Sequence record: OZ196212.1
Direction: 5' to 3' (one strand)
Length of the DNA stretch: 64,000 nt
Each line of letters begins with the position of its first letter. Position 1 is the first letter of the stretch. Positions 477 through 63,384 of this stretch are shown here, one piece after another. Position numbers and translations under genes: made by a program. A model generated the notes under the pieces. The model worked only from the letters and a program-made list of their open reading frames with translations. It was not told the DNA's origin and did no database searches.

Positions 477-484
477 CATAAATA
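477..484 (+). promoter_or_regulatory. T4-type late promoter (CATAAATA)
   Basis: TAAATA core ~25 nt before ATG 508; the same core precedes gp25, gp48, gp9 and wac. Confidence 0.6.
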
Positions 485-507
485 CAAGTAAACACATGAG
501 AGACGCT

Positions 508-1611
508 ATGAAAAAATTAAACACATTCATGGAAGAACTTCAGGCACTTAATGAAGTGTTCGTTCGTGGCGGCAAACCGCGCGACGGGTCTAAAGTTCTT
601 GCAAACGGAAAAAACATTTGGGTATGGAATAACGAGCGTGAGCTTGAACGTCTATTGCCTTTCATCAACAAAGAATTCAACTCCGATTTTGAAGACGAGT
701 ACGAGATCGATGAGTGGTACATGAGTGGAGCTGACGCAGTGTACGGGGAGATTGAACGCAGCAGCCTAGATATGCACGGTGATTCGACTTATCGCCCGTC
801 TACAGCGTCTGACACGCTCAGAAAGACGATTAAAGCACTGAATCTACGTGGCGTGACTCGTCGTTCGCGTTCTTTTACTACTGATTATGACGAAATCGAC
901 CACGACTTTGAAACGTCGCGTGCTGAATTCAACAAAAAGCTAGGTCAAAAAACGTTCTATCACGGCACATCGACGACTTACATCGAATCGATGCTCAAGA
1001 TCGGTCTAAAACCAGACGTAGGTGAATCGCAGTTCGATAAGATTGAACACAGCGACAAGGTGTTTGTCACGACTGAGCTTGATAAAGCAATGTTCCACGC
1101 GACTCATTCAGCGAATCAAAACAGCTCATTCCCTGTAATAATCGAGCTGAAGATTCCAGATGAGGCTAAACTAGTGTCGGATTACGACGTTGTTATCGAC
1201 ACGCTAGGTGCTGATTCTGACGAAGCACTTGAACTTGGCTACTCTGACATATATTACGGTGCAGTAAATGGTCGCGATGACGGCAAAAAATACGACGATA
1301 TGCACCAACGATTTGGTAAGCGTATCGGCAATCTATCGACTAAATTCGGTGTGTTCGGCTACAAGGGTCGTATCCCTGCAAGTCATTTCACGAAGATTCT
1401 AGCAGATACTGACGTAATCGAAGATGAAATCTCGATGAACTTCTATGAAATGGAAGACGAGTTCAAATTATCTGCGATGACATCAGAAGCGGGAAATCAT
1501 CGTTCAATTGACTACTGGTCTGAACAACGACCTGACAAATTCATATCGAATCTTGAAGACCGTTGGGAAGAGATTCGAGACGAGAACGAAGAAGAAGACG
1601 ATTGGGATTAA
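508..1611 (+). CDS. putative ADP-ribosyltransferase-fold protein, possibly virion-packaged
   Basis: FYHGTS...MLKIGLKP...VFVTTELDKAMFHA...PVIIELKIP pattern typical of H-type ART folds; start moved to 508 because 439 lies inside the terminator. Confidence 0.55.
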   Translation: MKKLNTFMEELQALNEVFVRGGKPRDGSKVLANGKNIWVWNNERELERLLPFINKEFNSDFEDEYEIDEWYMSGADAVYGEIERSSLDMHGDSTYRPSTASDTLRKTIKALNLRGVTRRSRSFTTDYDEIDHDFETSRAEFNKKLGQKTFYHGTSTTYIESMLKIGLKPDVGESQFDKIEHSDKVFVTTELDKAMFHATHSANQNSSFPVIIELKIPDEAKLVSDYDVVIDTLGADSDEALELGYSDIYYGAVNGRDDGKKYDDMHQRFGKRIGNLSTKFGVFGYKGRIPASHFTKILADTDVIEDEISMNFYEMEDEFKLSAMTSEAGNHRSIDYWSEQRPDKFISNLEDRWEEIRDENEEEDDWD

Positions 1612-1616
1612 ATACT

Positions 1617-1641
1617 AGGGAGCATTTAGCTCCCTTTTTTA
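1617..1641 (+). terminator. intrinsic terminator
   Basis: AGGGAGC-ATTTA-GCTCCCT followed by a T run. Confidence 0.75.
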
Positions 1642-1654
1642 TTGAGGTAAGAAA

Positions 1655-2134
1655 ATGTACAAATGTAAATATTTCGAAATATATGAACTCGTAACTCCGC
1701 AGATGTATGAAGCGTGGGGCGAGAAATGTTGGCAACTATTCGACGAGCGCGTTCTAATCACGCTAGACGCTCTCAGAAAGAAGTTCGGCTCATGCGTAGT
1801 CAATGACTGGAAGTGGGGCGGAAGATTCGATGACAGCGGTTTTAGAGACGTTCACTTCTATAGTTCAGTCGATGCGTACTTGAAGAGTCGTTCGCAGCAC
1901 AAATATGGTCGCGCAGTCGATGCAAAATTCAAAGTACCCGCTCACGAAGTGCGTAAATACATATTAGAGAACCCCGACGAATTCCCACACGTGAAATTCA
2001 TCGAAGTGGGTCCGTTAAAAGACGGCTCTGATATGTCATGGGTTCACATCGATGTTCGCAACGGTGACTTGCTATGTTGGTCGCCATTAGAGGGTGTCGT
2101 TTCAAAAGAAGATGTGATTCGTCGAAAACTTTAG
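1655..2134 (+). CDS. peptidase M15-family endolysin
   Basis: SGFR...SQHKYGRAVD...WVHIDVR zinc peptidase motifs. Confidence 0.85.
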   Translation: MYKCKYFEIYELVTPQMYEAWGEKCWQLFDERVLITLDALRKKFGSCVVNDWKWGGRFDDSGFRDVHFYSSVDAYLKSRSQHKYGRAVDAKFKVPAHEVRKYILENPDEFPHVKFIEVGPLKDGSDMSWVHIDVRNGDLLCWSPLEGVVSKEDVIRRKL

Positions 2135-5318: not shown

Positions 5319-8045
5319 TTATAAGCCCAGAATTTTCTTCCACCAAGGTTTTCTAAGCTCTTGTACTTCGCTCTGAAGCGTCTCGACTTTCTCGTTAAGC
5401 TCTTTAATCGATTCAATCAAAAGACCGCTTAGATTGCCGTACGCGACGCTTAAATGGTCTTCACCCTCGACAACAGCCTCAGGTAGAACAGCTTGCACCT
5501 CTTGAGCAATCACGCCCGTTTGTCGGTCGCAATCAACATCCGCACGATCAAACGTATACCCGTTCAATTGAGTCACTTTATCAAGAGCATCATCGATCTT
5601 CTCGATGTTCTTCTTCAAGCGAATATCAGAGTATGCAGTAACGTTACCAGAACACGTGAAATCACCGCCAGTCACTGACAGCAAGTTAGACGCTGAACAA
5701 TCCAATCGAATATCATAGTCGGCGGTACTATTCGTCGTATGAAAATCAATATATCTCGCGACTTCAAGAACACCCGATGTTGATACCTTTCCTAGATACT
5801 TCCCTGCGATGTCAGCATATGTTTGCAGCGTTGCAAACTCGCTATATTGCGCAAATCGCGCATCAGATTCTGTTTCGGTGTAGTAACGACCATCATGCGA
5901 GTGACTATCGTTTGCAACAGTAGTCGTAATCGATACTGTTTTGTTTCCACTACCGTCAACTGACATACTAGCAGAACCTGACACGTCACCTGTAAGTGTC
6001 GTTGTCAACGTACGAGCAGTTGTCCATTTATCAGCATTCGGGTGATAGTTGTCCATGAAAATGCGTTGTTGCGCATGATCAGCAGCCGTTGTGCTCGTGT
6101 TGTTTCGATACGCGTAATGCAGTTGGTCAATAGCACCAGTCTCTGAATATAGCGTATGTCTGAACTTCGAGCCGCCATTATGACCCCACTGAATCCAGTT
6201 GATAAATGCAGTAGTTGGTGCGCCTGCAACATTCGAAGCTGAACCCGTTCTGAATTCATCAGTTTGAGTATTCCAGTTCGCGTTTAGCGGGTCTAGTCGT
6301 GTGTGCATGTGACTATCGTTTGCAACAGTTGTCGTGATCGATACTGTTTTGTTCCCACTACCATCGACTGACATACTAGCAGAACCCGTGACATCACCAG
6401 TTAGCGTTGTTGTCAACGTTCTTGCAGTTGTCCATTTCGCCGCGCTAGTCGCAGTAGAAGCATTACCCTGAAGTGCACCGACAAATTTAACCGCATTCAC
6501 TGTACCGTCATTCAACGTCATAAAGATGCGTTTAACAAACGAATCAGTTTCGTAGAAATTAACTTCGTTATCAGAGCCGATTTCTAGTGTTCCAGACGCA
6601 GGTCCTTGTCTAACAAACGACCACGCACCGCTAAACCCAGACGCGGCTTCGTTTAGATGACCGAAGTACAGACCTTTATACGAAGATGAACCCCACTGAA
6701 TCGAACCAGTCATAGTATCGCCAGACTTCGCTACATATCCCGCACCGTTGATAGGCGCGAATCGAGAATCAGATTCTGTTTCAGTGTAGTAACGACCGTC
6801 ATGCGAGTGACTATCGTTCGCGACAGTTACTGAAATTGTTGCGTTGGTTGAGCCATCCCATACTACTGAGCCACTAACATCACCTGATAGCGTCAGCGTA
6901 CGCGCATTCGTCCATTTATCAGCATTTGGGTGATAGCCGTCATGAAATACACTCTGATTTCTATATCGAGCGTTATTCGCATCGAAATATAGAAGTTCAT
7001 GAGACACATCAGCCGATTCGAATGTTACTTGAAATTTACTAGAGTCTGCATCGATTTCATTGTCAATTCCGATGATAAGACCGCCGTCATCGACGTAAAA
7101 ATCAACAACGTCGTCCCCTGTATTCGAATTTGAGTTTCGCTTCAGACGCATACCAGTTAAGTATGACTTAGAATTTACATGTAGTGAACCAGTTATCGTG
7201 TCGCCTGCAACGTTCACATAACGCGCATCAGATTCCGTTTCAGTGTAATAACGACCATCATGCGAGTGACTATCGTTTGCAACAGTAACAGACAATGAAG
7301 CATTTGCAGAGCCATCCCATGAAACTGAGCCACTAACGTCACCTGATAGTGTTAGCGTGCGTGCAGTTGTCCACTTATCTGCATTCGGGTGATACGCTTC
7401 GTGAAATACGCGATTGCCTTGAAACTGGAATGTATTCGGGGTAACGTACAAGCCATTTGTAGTAGTTGTACCAACATACAATTCACCATCAGTGCGAACG
7501 CGAGACGAACCAAAGTAAATACCATCAGTGAACTCACCAGTATCGTTGATTCGTAGCCATGAATCGTACGAGCGAAATGCCGTCTTGCCGCGTAGATTGA
7601 AATTATCAACGTTTAGATTTACGACGTTAGTCTCAATCGACACACGCGTAGTTGATGTTGTATCTTCGCGAACTGTTAAATTGCCACCATCACCAACCAC
7701 GAACCATTTCTTCGAATCAGTCCAGTCCAGTAACGTCAGGCGAGGCGAGCTGCCTTGAATTTCAATATCATTACCAGAAGTAGTCAACTTACCGGTCATT
7801 GCATCGCCATCTTTGCGCACGTAACCAGCCGAATGAATCGGGGCAAAGTTCGCATTTGATTCTGTTTTTGTATATGCCGAAGTTGTCCCACCGTTGCCTA
7901 GTTCGCTTGGCAGTGGTGTGTCGTGTTCAGTAAAAACTTTATGACCGTTGTACAGAACTGTTTCGCCTTGAGGATCAAAGCGTAAGTTCCCTCCGTGCCA
8001 TACTATGTTACCACCGATTGCGGTAGTAGATCTTAGTTCTGCCAT
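5319..8045 (-). CDS. tail fibre with C-terminal S74 intramolecular chaperone
   Basis: repeated HPNADKWTTARTLTLSGDVSGS...HSHDGRYYTETE modules; YSDIRLKKNIEKID...GVIAQEV...SVAYGN. Confidence 0.9.
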   Translation of the reverse strand: MAELRSTTAIGGNIVWHGGNLRFDPQGETVLYNGHKVFTEHDTPLPSELGNGGTTSAYTKTESNANFAPIHSAGYVRKDGDAMTGKLTTSGNDIEIQGSSPRLTLLDWTDSKKWFVVGDGGNLTVREDTTSTTRVSIETNVVNLNVDNFNLRGKTAFRSYDSWLRINDTGEFTDGIYFGSSRVRTDGELYVGTTTTNGLYVTPNTFQFQGNRVFHEAYHPNADKWTTARTLTLSGDVSGSVSWDGSANASLSVTVANDSHSHDGRYYTETESDARYVNVAGDTITGSLHVNSKSYLTGMRLKRNSNSNTGDDVVDFYVDDGGLIIGIDNEIDADSSKFQVTFESADVSHELLYFDANNARYRNQSVFHDGYHPNADKWTNARTLTLSGDVSGSVVWDGSTNATISVTVANDSHSHDGRYYTETESDSRFAPINGAGYVAKSGDTMTGSIQWGSSSYKGLYFGHLNEAASGFSGAWSFVRQGPASGTLEIGSDNEVNFYETDSFVKRIFMTLNDGTVNAVKFVGALQGNASTATSAAKWTTARTLTTTLTGDVTGSASMSVDGSGNKTVSITTTVANDSHMHTRLDPLNANWNTQTDEFRTGSASNVAGAPTTAFINWIQWGHNGGSKFRHTLYSETGAIDQLHYAYRNNTSTTAADHAQQRIFMDNYHPNADKWTTARTLTTTLTGDVSGSASMSVDGSGNKTVSITTTVANDSHSHDGRYYTETESDARFAQYSEFATLQTYADIAGKYLGKVSTSGVLEVARYIDFHTTNSTADYDIRLDCSASNLLSVTGGDFTCSGNVTAYSDIRLKKNIEKIDDALDKVTQLNGYTFDRADVDCDRQTGVIAQEVQAVLPEAVVEGEDHLSVAYGNLSGLLIESIKELNEKVETLQSEVQELRKPWWKKILGL

Positions 8046-8116
8046 GTTATTGTCTCAGTTGTTCATTTATCATGTATTTATGCAGATATAAAAAAAGCCC
8101 CTTTCGGAGCTTTTCG

Positions 8117-15295: not shown

Positions 15296-16729
15296 TTATA
15301 AAGCGTATCGGTCGACACCGACAGTCTTCAGCATGATTTTCACTGGCTCAAGCTCACCACCCAACAGCGACGTTAGAATTGAAGGGCTGCAACCCGACAC
15401 TAACGCTGTGTTCGCTTCACCTGATTTAACAGGCACGTTGTCTAGACGACCACGCAAGTTCCAGAACACTAGTTGCGGCATTTCGTAGCCCGCGTTCGCA
15501 TACATGACTTTGATTGCATCGAAGTTCGTAGTGTTACGAGTATGCCAGCCACCGCCAGTACGAGCTTGATCGAATTCCATATCGCTCATGATAAGCAATT
15601 TGGTTGGCATTTCGTCTTGCGACAAGTTTGCCGTACGAGCGCGTTCAAGAAGAACTTCGAAGCATCGTGTGATGTTCGTGCTCATATCTTCGCCAGATCG
15701 TTGCATGTTGTCAAGACGCGACTTCAAGCTATCACCCGTCAACTTGTGAAAGTGCGGATCACTTGAGAACGAAATGAATTGATCTTTGAAGATACCCTCA
15801 TTACGTTCAGCGACGTAGATGCCAAGAGACATCGCAACTTCTTTACAAGTCACACTACCACCGTGTTCACCGTTGATACCACAGCCCATAGAGCCAGAAA
15901 CATCAACAACTGGAATCACGCGCTCGTCAGAGCCTTCCATGTAGTTCGGTAGAGCTTTCCATTGCTCATTTGCAACACGATGGTCACCCATTTTAACGCT
16001 GCGAACAACATCGTATGGGTAAACAGCACCTGCATTGATCTTCGCTTCACCTTTCACAAGCGATGTGATGTACTCACCGTATGCAGATTCAGCGTTACGA
16101 CCGAATGCTTTCTGATAGCGTGCAGACGCTACAGATGGCAGTTTGCCGAACTCGATCTCGCCCCAATTACGAGCACACATCTTCTGTTCAACAGTGTCAG
16201 ACAAAAGAGAGATCACTTTACGCCACTGCTTCGCGTTTACACCAATCGACTTGATTGTGCGCTTGAACACGACTGCGTTTTTGCTGCGCTCACGAGGAAA
16301 CCACTTAGCAGCAAGCGCGTTTTTGTCATTGACAATCGCGTGTGTCCACAGAGTGATAGCATCAGCTTCAAGAGAAGTACCGAACGCAGATACTAAGTCA
16401 TCGAAACGACCAAGTTCTGGGATCTTGCGCATAACTAGACGCGCTACTTCTGGTTGTTCTTTACACAGACGTGCAAAGATTTTGCGGAAAGTACCGCGCT
16501 CACCTGCACCGCCACGCACGTCGCGAGACCATAGCAAGATGCGAGTTGCAAGCTCAGGGTTTTCACCGAATGCGCGATTAAACGCAGTTAGTGACTGATC
16601 ATTACCGCGCATAGCGCCGATAGTGAAGAACAAGTTTAGACACTCGTTACCCGAAGTGCTGTGTGTTACTGCACCGTTTGCTGTACGTGAATCGTTAGAT
16701 TGCATAGCGTTCATAAATAAACTAGTCAT
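15296..16729 (-). CDS. DUF2828 plus vWA domain protein (TROVE/Ro60-like architecture)
   Basis: TANGAVTHSTSG..LNLFF, RDVRGGAGER, LAAKWFPRE, GAVYPYDVV, MIDAS DVSGSM and SDMEFD; ATG 16729 has a GGAG RBS. Confidence 0.85.
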   Translation of the reverse strand: MTSLFMNAMQSNDSRTANGAVTHSTSGNECLNLFFTIGAMRGNDQSLTAFNRAFGENPELATRILLWSRDVRGGAGERGTFRKIFARLCKEQPEVARLVMRKIPELGRFDDLVSAFGTSLEADAITLWTHAIVNDKNALAAKWFPRERSKNAVVFKRTIKSIGVNAKQWRKVISLLSDTVEQKMCARNWGEIEFGKLPSVASARYQKAFGRNAESAYGEYITSLVKGEAKINAGAVYPYDVVRSVKMGDHRVANEQWKALPNYMEGSDERVIPVVDVSGSMGCGINGEHGGSVTCKEVAMSLGIYVAERNEGIFKDQFISFSSDPHFHKLTGDSLKSRLDNMQRSGEDMSTNITRCFEVLLERARTANLSQDEMPTKLLIMSDMEFDQARTGGGWHTRNTTNFDAIKVMYANAGYEMPQLVFWNLRGRLDNVPVKSGEANTALVSGCSPSILTSLLGGELEPVKIMLKTVGVDRYAL

Positions 16730-16765: not shown

Positions 16766-17356
16766 ATGTTTCATATTGTATATCAAATAACAAATTTAAT
16801 AAACAACAAAATTTACGTCGGTAAGCATTCAACCGAAAACATTCATGACGAATACATGGGTTCGGGAAAGCTTTTGCTCAGAGCCATTAAAAAGTATGGC
16901 AAGGAGAATTTCACAAAAGACATACTGTTCGTATCATTAGACGAAAAGGATGCATATAAAGCAGAACATGAGATCGTGAATGAAGATTTTGTTCTCCGTG
17001 AAGACACATATAATCTCAAAGTTGGCGGTCTTGGTGGATCATCAGGAATAGAATCTCCATGCAAAGGTCGTCAACTGAGTGAAGATACTAAACTAAAAAT
17101 GAGAAAAAGTAAACAATTTTCTCAAAAACATTTAGATTATCTCTCAACTAAATTATCTGAGTACAACAAATCTAGACAAGGTGTTCAAAGAGACGATCTA
17201 AAGGGTAACTCAAACCCAATGCATCGAGGTAATTGGCATACACCCCACGGAATATTTGAAACATCAAGCGAAGCAGCGTGTGCCATAAAATGTAGTCAAT
17301 CAACAATTGTTAGACGTTGCAAAAATCCAAATTTTGAGGATTGGTACATCAAATAA
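16766..17356 (+). mobile_element. free-standing GIY-YIG homing endonuclease (Seg-like)
   Basis: IVYQITNLINNKIYVGKH...YMGSG; AT-rich; opposite orientation to its neighbours. Confidence 0.85.
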
Positions 17357-59696: not shown

Positions 59697-60626
59697 ATGA
59701 ACACATATAATGCAACTTCTCCACGTGAAATGAAAGACCTGATTTTAAGGCGCCTTGGTGCGCCTATTGTCAACGTCGAAGTGACCGAAGACCAAGTGTA
59801 CGACTGTATTTCTCGTGCGCTTGAGTTGTTCATTGAATATCACCCAGACGGTGTTAATAAAACGTACTCAATCATCACATTATCAGCCGAGCAAGCAGCA
59901 TCGGGTATCATTCAGTTAGATATCCCTGCCGAAGCTGTGACTAAGATTCTTCGAGGTGAAAGCACGTTCTGGACTATGGACGGTAACGCAACTTACTCAT
60001 GGTTCAGTGACTTCTTGACTGGTCTTGCAGGCGGTGCAATGGGCAATGGCTCATGTAACTCATACCACAACGGCATGTTGGGTGGCTCAAGTGGTCTATC
60101 TGACTATTGGAACTTGATGAGCTACAAAAACACGATGATGGACATTCTATCACCTGAGCATGATTACTGGTACAACTCGGTGAGTAAAACGCTGAAGCTA
60201 AATGCCAACTTGCAAGAGGGTGAAATAGTTGTTGTTGAAGCATTCGTTCCGACTGCGCTACTAGTTCAAGAATCTGGTACTGGTCTGATTGGTAACAGTG
60301 CTGCGACAATCGGCTCATATGAGGACGTATCATCACAGCAAGCGTTCGATGACCCGTACAGCATTTTGCGTCAGAACAACACAATCGGTAACCCGAATCA
60401 GTACGCTGAACAAAACGCGTATTCTGTGCGTTGGGTTAAAGATATGGCAACTGCTTTCACTAAGCAGATGAACGGTATTGTTCTTAAAAAGCATCAAGGC
60501 TTACAACTACCCGGTGGTATCACAGTTGACGGTAAAGAGATTTACGAAGAAGCAAGTCAAGAGATTGAGCGTCTACGTGAAGAACTAATGTCATTGACTC
60601 AGCCATTAGGCGTATACATAGGGTAA
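59697..60626 (+). CDS. 13: neck protein gp13
   Basis: MKDLILRRLGAPIVNVEVTEDQVYDCI; LPGGITVDG. Confidence 0.95.
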   Translation: MNTYNATSPREMKDLILRRLGAPIVNVEVTEDQVYDCISRALELFIEYHPDGVNKTYSIITLSAEQAASGIIQLDIPAEAVTKILRGESTFWTMDGNATYSWFSDFLTGLAGGAMGNGSCNSYHNGMLGGSSGLSDYWNLMSYKNTMMDILSPEHDYWYNSVSKTLKLNANLQEGEIVVVEAFVPTALLVQESGTGLIGNSAATIGSYEDVSSQQAFDDPYSILRQNNTIGNPNQYAEQNAYSVRWVKDMATAFTKQMNGIVLKKHQGLQLPGGITVDGKEIYEEASQEIERLREELMSLTQPLGVYIG

Positions 60627-60630
60627 TATC

Positions 60631-61461
60631 ATGAGCGCATACGACAATAATTCTGGTAGTATGTTCGCGAAATTGGAAAATCAGAAGGGCTTTGACAAGA
60701 TCTATGATGATCATCTTGTCAACCCTCATTTCAATTGGATGAACCACACCAACGAACAAAACTTAGCCGATATGCTTGTCGCTGAGTCAATCATCAACCG
60801 CGGTGTTGAGTGTGTTTACATTCGACGCACGATGGAAAACGTAGATCTAGTATTCGGTGAAGATCCGCTGAGTCGATTTACGAGTCACTTCAGAATGGCG
60901 TTGTATGTTGAATCATTTGACGGCTGGGATGGTGATGGTGACTGGTTTAGTAAGTTCGGCTTTCAAGTTAACGATGAAATGGACGTGTGTATCAACCCAC
61001 GACTGTTCATTCAACAAGGCGACGGCAACAACCCGTTGATGGGCGATTTGATTTACTTCCCTGCTGCGAACGGCTTGTTCGAGATCAGTTGGGTTGAGAA
61101 AGAAAACCCGTGGTATCAAGCAGGTGCTTTGCCAATGCGTAAGCTGAAGATGACTAAATTCGTTTACTCTGGGGAAGAGATCGCACTGGAACGCCCTGAG
61201 GCAGTTATTGACTCGATTGATGACATTCTTAACTTCGGTGAGGACACAGACGAAATGATCGATATTGATAGAATCAACGCGTTGAACGACACGTGGGATA
61301 TCGGTAACGAACAAGGCGAAGAAATGGCGCAAATCGAAGATGAGGTTGATGAGTTCTATCAAGGCGAGCAAGTTGCTCCGAATGGTAGTGACGTGCAGCC
61401 ATCTACACCGTCGCCAGCGCCAATGGGCTTCGGTAATTCACAAAATCCATTTGACAATTAA
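60631..61461 (+). CDS. 14: neck protein gp14
   Basis: DLVFGEDPLSRF; SKFGFQVNDE; PLMGDLIYFP. Confidence 0.95.
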   Translation: MSAYDNNSGSMFAKLENQKGFDKIYDDHLVNPHFNWMNHTNEQNLADMLVAESIINRGVECVYIRRTMENVDLVFGEDPLSRFTSHFRMALYVESFDGWDGDGDWFSKFGFQVNDEMDVCINPRLFIQQGDGNNPLMGDLIYFPAANGLFEISWVEKENPWYQAGALPMRKLKMTKFVYSGEEIALERPEAVIDSIDDILNFGEDTDEMIDIDRINALNDTWDIGNEQGEEMAQIEDEVDEFYQGEQVAPNGSDVQPSTPSPAPMGFGNSQNPFDN

Positions 61462-61470
61462 GGGGGCGAC

Positions 61471-62784
61471 GTGAAGGGTTATTTTTATCATAACTCGATA
61501 CGAAAGTACATTCTCTTGATGGGTAATTTGTTTTCTGGCATCTATGTTGCACGCGGTGACGCGTATCGCAAGGTGCCGATTACAGTCTCATCAAAGGAGC
61601 ACTTTGTTGCTGCTTTGAATTCTCAAGAGTTGAACGGCGACGGGAACATGGCATTAGTAGCCACGAAGTTGCCGCGTATCGGTCTAGATATGGTGTCGTG
61701 TACATACGATTCCACTAGAAAAACAAACGTAACGAATCGCAAGTTGACGCGTGATTTAAGTGCTGATCGACCAGCCATGAACAAGCTATTCAATCCGGTT
61801 CCTTACGATTTTGAATTTGAAGTGAGCGTGTACACGCGTCATCAAGACGATGCATTTCAAATCATAGAACAGATTTTACCATACTTTCAGCCCCAATTCA
61901 ATACAATGATCAAAGAGCTGAATGAAAGCGAAGTGTTAATCGATGAGCGTGACATCCCTATCATCTTAGAATCTGCCGTCCCTGAGACGACATTCGAAGG
62001 CAGTGCGGGTGAAATGCGTCATATCGAATGGACACTTAACATGCGTCTGAAGGGTTGGCTATACCCGCCTACAAACGTACAATTCGGTGAAATCAGAACG
62101 ATTTACCTCGACTTCAATGAAGAAGAGAAAGAGATTATTCACGCAGAACGTGAGCCGGTTAGTAATACTACCGTACTGGCGTATGCAATACGCGAAGCAA
62201 TCGGTCTAGACTCGACGGTAGCATGGCGCTCTAGCATCGATTCGATGATGGGAATGTCGTGGAACACTCGTGCTGAACTTGAGCGTGACGTTGATATCGA
62301 CTGGTTCAGACGACCTCAAATTACAAGTGAATACGATATTTTAGCAAATATTCGAAACTCTATGCAAAGCGATATTGTATATGATTGGGGAACGTCACCG
62401 GTAGTTGATTCTGATATGAACGCTTCTTGGAATATTCGTTCTGACGTGGGCGTTGATACTGACATCGACTGGTATCATATGTCATCAGTTCATCATGAGA
62501 ATGTCGTGGCTTATGACCACCTCGCTGTGATTGGCTCATCGTCTAATGTACAGTGGGATTCAGGTGATGTTGTTGATAGTGAGATTGGTGTCGATTGGAA
62601 CGTTCGTGAGTCTGCCGTTCGTGAGTTTAATTTAACATATGAGTCGTTGGGCACAGTGTTTAATGACTTCGGTGTTAACTGGAATGCAGCGGGCTTGGTT
62701 TCTAATTATAACCAACAGATCTTCTTTATCGGTGATAGAATCCCGATTACTAACACGCTTGATGTTGACTACATCATCGAATAA
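61471..62784 (+). CDS. 15: tail sheath terminator gp15 with ~220-aa C-terminal extension
   Basis: YFYHNSIRKY...LPRI...QIIEQILPYFQP. Confidence 0.9.
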   Translation: MKGYFYHNSIRKYILLMGNLFSGIYVARGDAYRKVPITVSSKEHFVAALNSQELNGDGNMALVATKLPRIGLDMVSCTYDSTRKTNVTNRKLTRDLSADRPAMNKLFNPVPYDFEFEVSVYTRHQDDAFQIIEQILPYFQPQFNTMIKELNESEVLIDERDIPIILESAVPETTFEGSAGEMRHIEWTLNMRLKGWLYPPTNVQFGEIRTIYLDFNEEEKEIIHAEREPVSNTTVLAYAIREAIGLDSTVAWRSSIDSMMGMSWNTRAELERDVDIDWFRRPQITSEYDILANIRNSMQSDIVYDWGTSPVVDSDMNASWNIRSDVGVDTDIDWYHMSSVHHENVVAYDHLAVIGSSSNVQWDSGDVVDSEIGVDWNVRESAVREFNLTYESLGTVFNDFGVNWNAAGLVSNYNQQIFFIGDRIPITNTLDVDYIIE

Positions 62785-62835
62785 ATAAATGGTCTTCTAA
62801 ATAAGAAGACCACCTTTTTAAATTGGAGAACCCTA

Positions 62836-63384
62836 ATGGCTATTATAGCAGGTGATTTGAAATTCAAAAGAAGTCTGCACACAGTTGCAGCAAGCGTAGG
62901 AAATGGCAACACGCATGATTCGGAGGTTGATTCTCTGGGTGGTGGTGTTAGCGCAGTTGAGTTGGTGTCAAATCAACTGCATGATTTGTTTGATGCTGTA
63001 CCGTCTGCTGAATCAGCGGCGGGTCGCGTTGAATATCGTTGCTTCTACGTTCAAAACGAACACGCATCACTGACGTTGTATGATTCTAAAGTATTCATAT
63101 CAAACAACACTGCGTCGGTTGATTCGCTTATTGAAATCGCACTCGATCCCGTTGCAGTAAACGGTGAAGACAGTTCGATTTTACTAGACGACGAAACAGA
63201 TTCTGGTTCACATTTGACTGCATTGACATTCGTTGATGCGCCATCATTTGAATCTGGTCTAGATATCGGTAATCTAGCAGCGGGTGAGCAGCGTGCTATT
63301 TGGATTAAGCGTACTATTAACGCAGGCGCTGCCGCAGCGGCTGAAGATGCTACAATCGCAATTCGCGGCGACACTGACGCGTAA
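62836..63384 (+). CDS. late structural hypothetical protein
   Basis: TAAATA upstream, GGAG RBS; DLFDAV...GRVEYRCFYVQN. Confidence 0.7.
   Translation: MAIIAGDLKFKRSLHTVAASVGNGNTHDSEVDSLGGGVSAVELVSNQLHDLFDAVPSAESAAGRVEYRCFYVQNEHASLTLYDSKVFISNNTASVDSLIEIALDPVAVNGEDSSILLDDETDSGSHLTALTFVDAPSFESGLDIGNLAAGEQRAIWIKRTINAGAAAAAEDATIAIRGDTDA

Follow-up and report, generated by a model that had tools for sequence, protein, structure and literature searches.

The window analysed here, a stretch of 64,000 nucleotides, forms the last 64 kb of the 254-kb record OZ196212.1. This record is from Vibrio phage D527, a Schizotequatrovirus that resembles KVP40 and is related to T4. The open reading frame (ORF) 508-1611 of this window codes for a protein of 367 amino acids (aa) with the fold of an ADP-ribosyltransferase (ART) of the His class. 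On balance, we consider it probable that the protein is a mono-ART which is loaded into the head of the phage and trimmed by the prohead protease, i.e. that the whole chain of late expression, tagging, trimming, packaging and delivery applies. Positions 400-1700 of the window correspond with 100% identity to 190506-191806 of OZ196212.1. For whole-genome scans the D527 genome was rebuilt from pieces of the public record.

According to this proposal, a two-domain mono-ART would be made late in infection. Its leader of 16 residues would direct it to the scaffolding core within the prohead, in the manner of the capsid-targeting sequence (CTS) of T4, and the gp21-type prohead protease would cut the leader off after L14-N15-E16. 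Low numbers of the mature protein (~40.5 kDa) would remain in the head filled with DNA, and they would exit together with this DNA when the phage next infects. Inside the new host, the enzyme would draw on nicotinamide adenine dinucleotide (NAD+) to ADP-ribosylate a target picked by its family-specific N-terminal domain, in parallel to the Alt-like enzyme of D527, which belongs to the arginine-serine-glutamate (R-S-E) class.

Fold and active site

The homolog in phage KVP40, KVP40.0290 (69% identity), is annotated as hypothetical, phrog_11974 of PHROGs carries the label 'unknown function', and the KVP40.0290 family is without a Pfam model. The coding sequence and the parts of the ART domain are as follows.

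508..1611, + strand: coding sequence of 367 aa, KVP40.0290 / phrog_11974 family, from ATG 508 to TAA 1609-1611
913..1539, + strand: predicted ART domain of the His class, aa 136-344 (VIA, Foldseek, hhalign)
961..969, + strand: H152-G153-T154, putative NAD-binding motif of the first core strand, aligned with YHGT of Tpt1/KptA
1063..1065, + strand: F186 in place of the triad Tyr (His in KptA), hhalign column VF(V/I)T / VHLS
1180..1188, + strand: D225-Y226-D227 with the candidate catalytic acid (Asp, compare Arr H-Y-D), both Asp invariant, placed in the active site by inference
1357..1377, + strand: G284-Y-K-G-R-I-P290, conserved motif of a C-terminal strand of the ART core
1540..1608, + strand: acidic C-terminal tail by composition, 12 Asp/Glu in 23 residues

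An AlphaFold model of the whole protein, built on 20 relatives, was searched against solved structures with Foldseek and with VIA, which is independent of Foldseek. The first-pass annotation of this DNA, made from the letters alone, had claimed an ART fold to be checked by structure prediction and Foldseek, and both programs recovered it. The top Foldseek matches were ARTs, namely pertussis S1, PltA, cholera A1, KptA and TreX, with E 2e-4 to 1e-3. With VIA the best match was KptA (9ld3; Z 11.0, 23% identity), followed by TreX (9.5), Arr (9.0), mouse Tpt1 (8.7), PltA and pertussis S1 (8.2-8.4), DarT (7.6) and then PARPs (5-7) and diphtheria-type toxins. All seven chains with a Z of at least 8 are ARTs, as are nearly all of the top 50 matches, and the coverage extends over aa ~136-344. 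From these models it is almost certain that residues ~136-344 form an ART fold of the His class.

Profile comparisons pointed in the same direction. The family profile matched Tpt1 chains with E 5e-4, and hhalign against KptA of E. coli gave a probability of 88.7% (E 2.6e-6) over aa 140-221, with FYHGT..GLKP paired to LYHGT..GLIA, VFVT to VHLS and PVIIEL to PVILTV. The Pfam models PARP, Tpt1 and Arr all remained below their cut-offs for the D527 protein; PARP (PF00644) reached 16.3 bits (gathering threshold 26.7), and the NCBIfam Tpt1 model was likewise sub-threshold with 12.3 bits (cut-off 231). Among 20 family members, weak Pfam matches were obtained to PARP for 11 (best E 1.5e-5), to Tpt1 for six (best E 0.0069) and to Arr for three (best E 0.055). 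A search of the PDB with the single sequence gave nothing useful, the PADLOC search gave no match for the protein, and the ESM Atlas yielded a weak lead alone, toward a viral 'DarT/PARP' cluster.

Conservation was examined in an alignment of 162 representatives sharing at most 50% identity. The central HGT-type motif, which had been named beforehand, hardly varies: H152 and G153 are invariant (162/162), as are D225, D227 and Y285, and T154 is present in 161. Nearly as constant are F186 (159, with Tyr in the other three), H197 and K106 (158 each). Within the GY.GRIP motif, G287 was found in 160, R288 in 146, I289 in 151 and P290 in 145 of the representatives. A distant subgroup (L024-L026) has Tyr at 186 and 197. 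The acidic tail is kept as well; 120 of 144 family members end in 15 residues that include at least six Asp/Glu. For PF03496, the R-S-E family, no match to the 367-aa protein was detected, and its first-strand residue is His, not Arg. The Alt-like protein of D527 does match PF03496, and the earlier separation of an H-class enzyme from R-S-E Alt stands.

Published ART patterns are H-Y-D for Arr, H-H-h with an R-H-R-R tetrad for Tpt1 and H-H-D for the phage anti-CRISPR protein AcrIF11 (PMC8120803). The catalytic triad of the D527 protein would be H152, F186 and either D225 or D227, an Arr-like H-F/Y-D pattern. The protein is likely to be a catalytically competent ART. The Phe in place of the triad Tyr, and Asp rather than Glu as the acid, would also fit a protein that has the ART fold but no catalysis and that serves the head as a structural or scaffolding component. 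This is highly improbable, as H-G-T, D-x-D and GY.GRIP are kept over hundreds of diverged clusters, dN/dS (the ratio of nonsynonymous to synonymous substitution rates) is 0.14, the module is repeatedly fused to Nudix and other ART modules, and Arr and AcrIF11 are active enzymes with Asp as third residue (PMC8120803).

Leader sequence and prohead protease

508..555, + strand: leader MKKLNTFMEELQALNE of aa 1-16, a predicted propeptide for capsid targeting with a site of gp21 type, L14-N15-E16, modelled as a low-confidence helix outside the folded domain

A leader resembling CTS and gp21 sites had been claimed for the protein, and MKKLNTFMEELQALNE agrees with this when it is compared across the family. 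At the aligned position P1 is Glu in 143 of 149 members and P3 is Leu, Ile or Val in 143 of 148, while P2 is Asn in 80. E16 forms the column of lowest entropy (0.3 bits) among the first 40. The leaders preceding this site differ in length, with a mode of 9 aa, further lengths of 13-16 and a range of 4-27. Their consensus is M-[RK]-x-x-[EQD]-[ILF]-[LI]-[NTS]-E; after M-[KR] comes a residue with an aromatic or aliphatic side chain, P5 is acidic or Gln and P4 is hydrophobic. Examples are MKKFQDFLAE, MTFKEFYLNE, MSFKEFLLE and MKTFKEY.... In the T4 record NC_000866, ipII and ipIII start with MKTYQEFIAE↓A, ipI with MKTFKEF...ITE↓A and Alt with MELITE↓L (the arrow marks the known or predicted cleavage site). 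A minimal leader of five residues is found in gp401 of Salicola phage SCTP-2 (L033:3869-4987), which starts with MLINE↓IITHG.

For T4, a tag of 10 residues from IPIII is enough to target a protein to the head; residues 4 and 7 are important for the targeting, residues 8 and 10 for processing by gp21, and propeptides with lengths of 7 to 65 residues are removed from the virion proteins (PMC9026906). D527 codes for a gp21-type prohead protease (Peptidase_S77, E 3.6e-97). Because LNE↓AVVDGDHG of D527 gp23 aligns with the maturation site LTE↓AEIGGDHG of T4, and because the Alt-like protein starts with MIGFQELNE↓T, LNE would be where this protease cuts its two best-founded substrates. A Peptidase_S77 protease was also present in four of the five large viral contigs holding a family member; the fifth contig is 31% complete. 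Altogether, the family-wide comparison supports the view that the leader behaves as a T4-type tag for capsid targeting and gp21 cleavage. Among the D527 genes with a late promoter the leader motif occurred in 10 of 24, compared to a background of 25%, which is too weak to be used.

Promoter, terminators and start codon

424..473, + strand: intrinsic terminator, hairpin of 14 + 4 bp followed by U6 (-26.4 kcal/mol, z -7.2), closing the upstream early or middle gene run
477..484, + strand: putative T4-type late promoter box, variant CATAAATA, one mismatch to T4 TATAAATA, directly 3' of the terminator
498..503, + strand: Shine-Dalgarno-like GAGAGA serving ATG 508; KVP40 has GAGGA at the equivalent place
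1617..1635, + strand: terminator (-12.4 kcal/mol, z -3.65), closing the monocistronic unit

The claim of a late promoter was upheld in so far as CATAAATA follows a strong terminator and is conserved. Hairpin and T-run of the upstream terminator are present in all six Schizotequatrovirus lineages, with different stem sequences. Despite this, the box is unchanged in five of them (D527, 6E35.1a, KVP40, VH7D and F86). The sole deviating lineage, Vibrio phage 1.081.O (L031:308-453), has ACTAAATA in its place and retains terminator and gene. The record of 1.081.O is also the only one with the annotation 'PARP catalytic domain protein'. No sigma-70-like site was seen between the terminator at 424-473 and the gene start.

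The octamer CATAAATA alone is not above chance in the 64-kb window (three copies, 2.7 expected). What counts is its placement. All three copies lie upstream of a correctly oriented gene, and in the whole D527 genome four of six are situated just upstream of genes, i.e. of ORF 508-1611, the Alt-like gene, a 908-aa fibre gene and a GIY-YIG ORF. The copy at 8075-8082 (-) of the window is found 29 nt upstream of the 908-aa fibre-like gene (5319-8045, -), which supports the variant as a working late box in D527. The third copy, at 16712-16719 (+), precedes the GIY-YIG-like homing-endonuclease ORF 16766-17356; the seg genes of T4 are likewise preceded by late boxes. The Alt-like R-S-E ART gene (D527 61180-62874, -; locus L003:11281-12975), which carries the PF03496 match, has CATAAATA 32 nt upstream. 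The canonical TATAAATA is used in D527 upstream of the sheath, gp22, gp23, gp24-like and fibre genes.

The layout of terminator, late box and gene is common to ORF 508-1611, the D527 Alt-like gene and T4 alt (hairpin, TATAAATA, gene). Together with the terminator and the conserved CATAAATA, this alt-like layout makes late expression of ORF 508-1611 a well-motivated prediction. In distant relatives late-box motifs upstream were not consistent (L006, L007); in L020 a terminator is followed by GATAAATA. A look for RNA data returned no listed run, and no paper on the KVP40 transcriptome was found in the literature search.

Public gene calls for D527 and 6E35.1a place the start at ATG 496, four codons upstream of 508, resulting in a protein of 371 aa (MRDAM...). 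In KVP40 the ATG matching 496 runs directly into a stop codon, and in D527 the GAGAGA at 498-503 serves ATG 508. Position 508 is therefore the likelier start by sequence. The choice between the two affects how the leader of the 367-aa protein is read.

Detection in particles

Published proteomics of phage 6E35.1a describes 94 proteins detected in particles precipitated with polyethylene glycol (PEG) (10.1101/2024.12.24.630238, Suppl. Tables 3 and 8). The ortholog of the 367-aa protein, VP6E351A_0357 (QZI87545.1; 97% identity), is among them with 18 and 4 spectral counts, and it is a core gene of 18/18 phages with a dN/dS of 0.14 (10.1101/2024.12.24.630238). Virion mass spectrometry had been proposed in the first-pass annotation. 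The detection itself is on record and is compatible with low-copy packaging, without proving it. The Alt-like protein reached 122 and 233 counts in the same particles (10.1101/2024.12.24.630238). Another candidate for head-packaged cargo is a 286-aa protein (D527 60291-61151, +; L003:10392-11252) with a weak match to DUF6934, TATAAATA 22 nt upstream and the start MIIFE↓A, the ortholog of which (VP6E351A_0094) had 16 and 61 particle counts.

Several observations weigh against a packaged and delivered ART. The preparation also contained the non-structural NadV (16/23) and spanins (12/10) (10.1101/2024.12.24.630238). Given precipitation by PEG alone and such counts for non-structural proteins, 18/4 does not stand out clearly from contamination. 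Of the D527 genes, 25% code for [LI]xE among the first 20 residues, so that the motif is unremarkable in one sequence. Conservation of E16 and of the hydrophobic P1' and P3' may be structural, as this is the start of the first strand. The 367-aa protein is acidic, with an isoelectric point (pI) of 4.7, whereas the T4 internal proteins are basic, and the late box is a one-mismatch variant of TATAAATA. The whole-protein model is of middling confidence, with a predicted local distance difference test (pLDDT) value of 72. Finally, the triad Tyr is replaced by Phe, which is aromatic and lacks the hydroxyl group, and the catalytic Asp is placed by inference.

Some of these points fit the main alternative, a late ART that stays unpackaged in the cytoplasm. 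Its substrates there would be components of the host or the phage at the end of the cycle, and it might for example affect assembly, the timing of lysis or superinfection; on this view the Glu would have a structural role and the virion counts would stem from carry-over. The counts agree with it, since 18 and 4 are low and uneven values like those of clear contaminants. The acidic protein and the conserved P1' to P4', which belong to the first strand, agree with it too. It does not explain why leaders of variable length (4-27 aa) and T4-tag-like composition stand before a fixed [LI]xE, nor why [LI]xE is retained before internal modules of polyvalent-type proteins. Furthermore, the gene layout is that of alt and the family co-occurs with gp21-type proteases. 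We regard a purely cytoplasmic ART as rather unlikely and prefer the head-packaged enzyme.

Substrate and N-terminal domain

556..912, + strand: N-terminal α/β domain, aa 17-135, family-specific, presumed module for recognition of target or partner (separate model)
823-825, + strand: K106, conserved residue of the N-terminal domain (158/162)

Residues 17-136 were modelled separately with confident values (pLDDT 82.7; predicted template modelling score, pTM, 0.75). Among solved structures no relative of this model was found (best Foldseek E 0.69; best VIA Z 4.3, below noise). A PDB sequence search with the domain gave no match, and in the viral structure library BFVD it matched its own family alone.

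As targets, the first-pass annotation had offered protein, nucleic acid or, as in Tpt1, RNA 2'-phosphate. The comparison with Tpt1 disfavours the last of these. Identity of the N-terminal domain with the winged-helix RNA lobe of Tpt1 was rejected, as hhalign against KptA gave 0.1% and no fold match was obtained. Likening S101-x-x-L-x-K106 to the L-R-H helix of Tpt1 was also rejected, since hhalign gave no support. No sign of the R-H-R-R tetrad was seen in the 367-aa protein; the position of the fourth Arg (184) was the only alignable one, and it is variable (K, A, L, V, R, H or N) in a region that holds an insertion. A search of the D527 genome for PF01885 gave no match, and the pI of 4.7 compares with 9.4 for KptA. 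With no RNA lobe, no sign of the tetrad residues and an acidic pI, a Tpt1-like role on RNA 2'-phosphate is unlikely. Because the RNA lobe is missing, the fourth Arg varies and the pI is acidic, a protein target appears favoured over a nucleic-acid target, and the N-terminal domain would serve as its recognition module.

More generally, the substrate could be something other than protein: a nucleic-acid end (5'- or 2'-phosphate as for KptA), a base as for DarT or a small molecule as for Arr. The purpose would then be RNA repair or the neutralisation of a host compound or signal. In favour of this, KptA (Z 11.0, 23% identity) and Arr (Z 9.0) are the closest solved folds, the profile matches Tpt1, and the Asp triad is as in Arr (PMC8120803). 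The conserved K106 and R288 could bind phosphate, and D527 is rich in RNA-repair genes. The N-terminal domain is, however, not the winged-helix lobe of Tpt1 (hhalign 0.1%, no fold match), the fourth-Arg position varies (K/A/L/V), PF01885 stays below its cut-off and the pI of 4.7 is far from the 9.4 of KptA. Moreover, a late promoter and a head tag are ill-suited to a repair enzyme needed during infection. A non-protein substrate is thus distinctly improbable, and modification of a protein after ejection remains the preferred reading.

Relatives and fused proteins

A HMMER scan of 1.84 billion cluster representatives revealed 1108 relatives at E<=1e-3, including 342 at E<=1e-30, the latter mostly of 320-370 aa. 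Using tblastn with two distant members, no cultured carriers were found except KVP40-like vibriophages and Salicola phage SCTP-2, which is the only cultured carrier outside Vibrio.

Fused metagenomic proteins of 500-1900 aa were also found. The module stands beside Nudix in L015 (142-3987), P0061, P0066 and P0072, beside further PARP-like domains in P0061, P0072 and P0127, and beside ART-PolyVal domains in P0143 and P0096 (within proteins of 1100-1900 aa). P0143 lies in a 376-kb contig and adjoins other proteins of >1000 aa, one of them with Nudix. Internal copies of the module are each preceded by [LI]xE, e.g. ...ISE↓MFVKG, ...LNE↓MIVRG and ...ILNE↓LRIVK. From the sequences, this is what would be expected if the head protease frees the modules from a packaged precursor. 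For many phage ARTs, packaging into the head has been predicted (PMC9503650). The fusions appear to tie the family to the themes of polyvalent proteins and head-packaged ARTs of that study.

A broader reading would be a widespread and self-contained cassette of tag, adaptor and His-class ART, which prohead proteases of the T4 type would excise from single genes or from polyvalent precursors and which would act after ejection on a target other than a protein side chain. Candidate targets would be phosphate ends of entering or host nucleic acid and an NAD-derived or other small-molecule defence signal, and the ART would act jointly with co-delivered Nudix modules. We consider such a cassette improbable.

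Relation to known ADP-ribosyltransferases and head proteins

The T4 ARTs Alt, ModA and ModB are all R-S-E enzymes, and to our knowledge packaging into the head and ejection are established for no other phage ART than Alt. With Alt the 367-aa protein shares the order of terminator, late box and gene, a short propeptide that has [LI]xE at its end and is followed by a hydrophobic P1' (MELITE↓L in T4), occurrence in particle preparations, the predicted NAD-dependent ART fold and the proposed delivery with the DNA. Alt is an R-S-E enzyme (PF03496), whereas the D527 protein is of the His class (H-F-D). Furthermore, it is half the size of Alt with an unrelated N-terminal domain, so that homology is limited to the superfamily fold. 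Its ortholog had ~ten-fold fewer particle counts than the Alt-like protein.

The resemblance to the T4 internal proteins concerns the leader. MKKFQDFLAE, MTFKEFYLNE and MKTFKEY... of the family match MKTYQEFIAE and MKTFKEF... of T4, with cargo that varies. The internal proteins are small and basic, but the D527 cargo would be an acidic enzyme of 40 kDa. In addition, P2 is mostly Asn in the family, and P1' is hydrophobic rather than Ala.

Tpt1/KptA provides the best match of the NAD lobe in structure and sequence, with YHGT..GLxP followed by strand, helix and strand. The D527 protein differs from it by the lack of the winged-helix RNA lobe, by Phe for the second His, by its acidic instead of basic character and by Asp where Tpt1 has a hydrophobic residue (PMC8120803). 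With the rifampin ART Arr (H-Y-D) and with AcrIF11 (H-H-D) it shares a compact His-class core and Asp as the third residue. AcrIF11, compared here by its published description alone, gives an earlier example of a phage ART of the His class that is directed against a host defence protein (PMC8120803). Membership of the Arr family is not seen at the sequence level (Arr Pfam E 0.055 at best). Neither Arr nor AcrIF11 is head-tagged or contains an N-terminal domain of the D527 type. The polyvalent proteins and ART-PolyVal (Iyer et al.; PMC9503650) have in common with the family that the module occurs inside proteins of 1100-1900 aa beside ART-PolyVal, PARP-like and Nudix domains. The module of KVP40-like phages, by contrast, forms a gene by itself that has a tag and a promoter of its own.

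An ART of a different clade (H-F/Y-D, nearest to KptA and Arr) with a new N-terminal domain appears to share the delivery route of Alt. The family is large and uncharacterised. Its cultured carriers are nearly all KVP40-like vibriophages, which can be grown and engineered and offer a tractable system. These phages make their own NAD+ (NadV, NatV, PnuC). If the proposal is true, the protein would represent a second class of ejected NAD-dependent effectors, and pull-downs with the N-terminal domain would give a concrete handle on a new host target. The tag would also allow the proteins co-delivered with DNA by many uncultured marine T4-like and jumbo phages to be read from sequence.

Neighbouring genes

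The neighbours of ORF 508-1611 on the same strand are a gene for an M15 peptidase or endolysin-like protein, PhoH and two unknowns. The M15-peptidase / endolysin-like gene (phrog_894/35417) lies downstream at 1655-2134 (+) of the window, without a late box of its own after the terminator at 1617-1635. Its ortholog was detected in particles with 2 and 0 counts.

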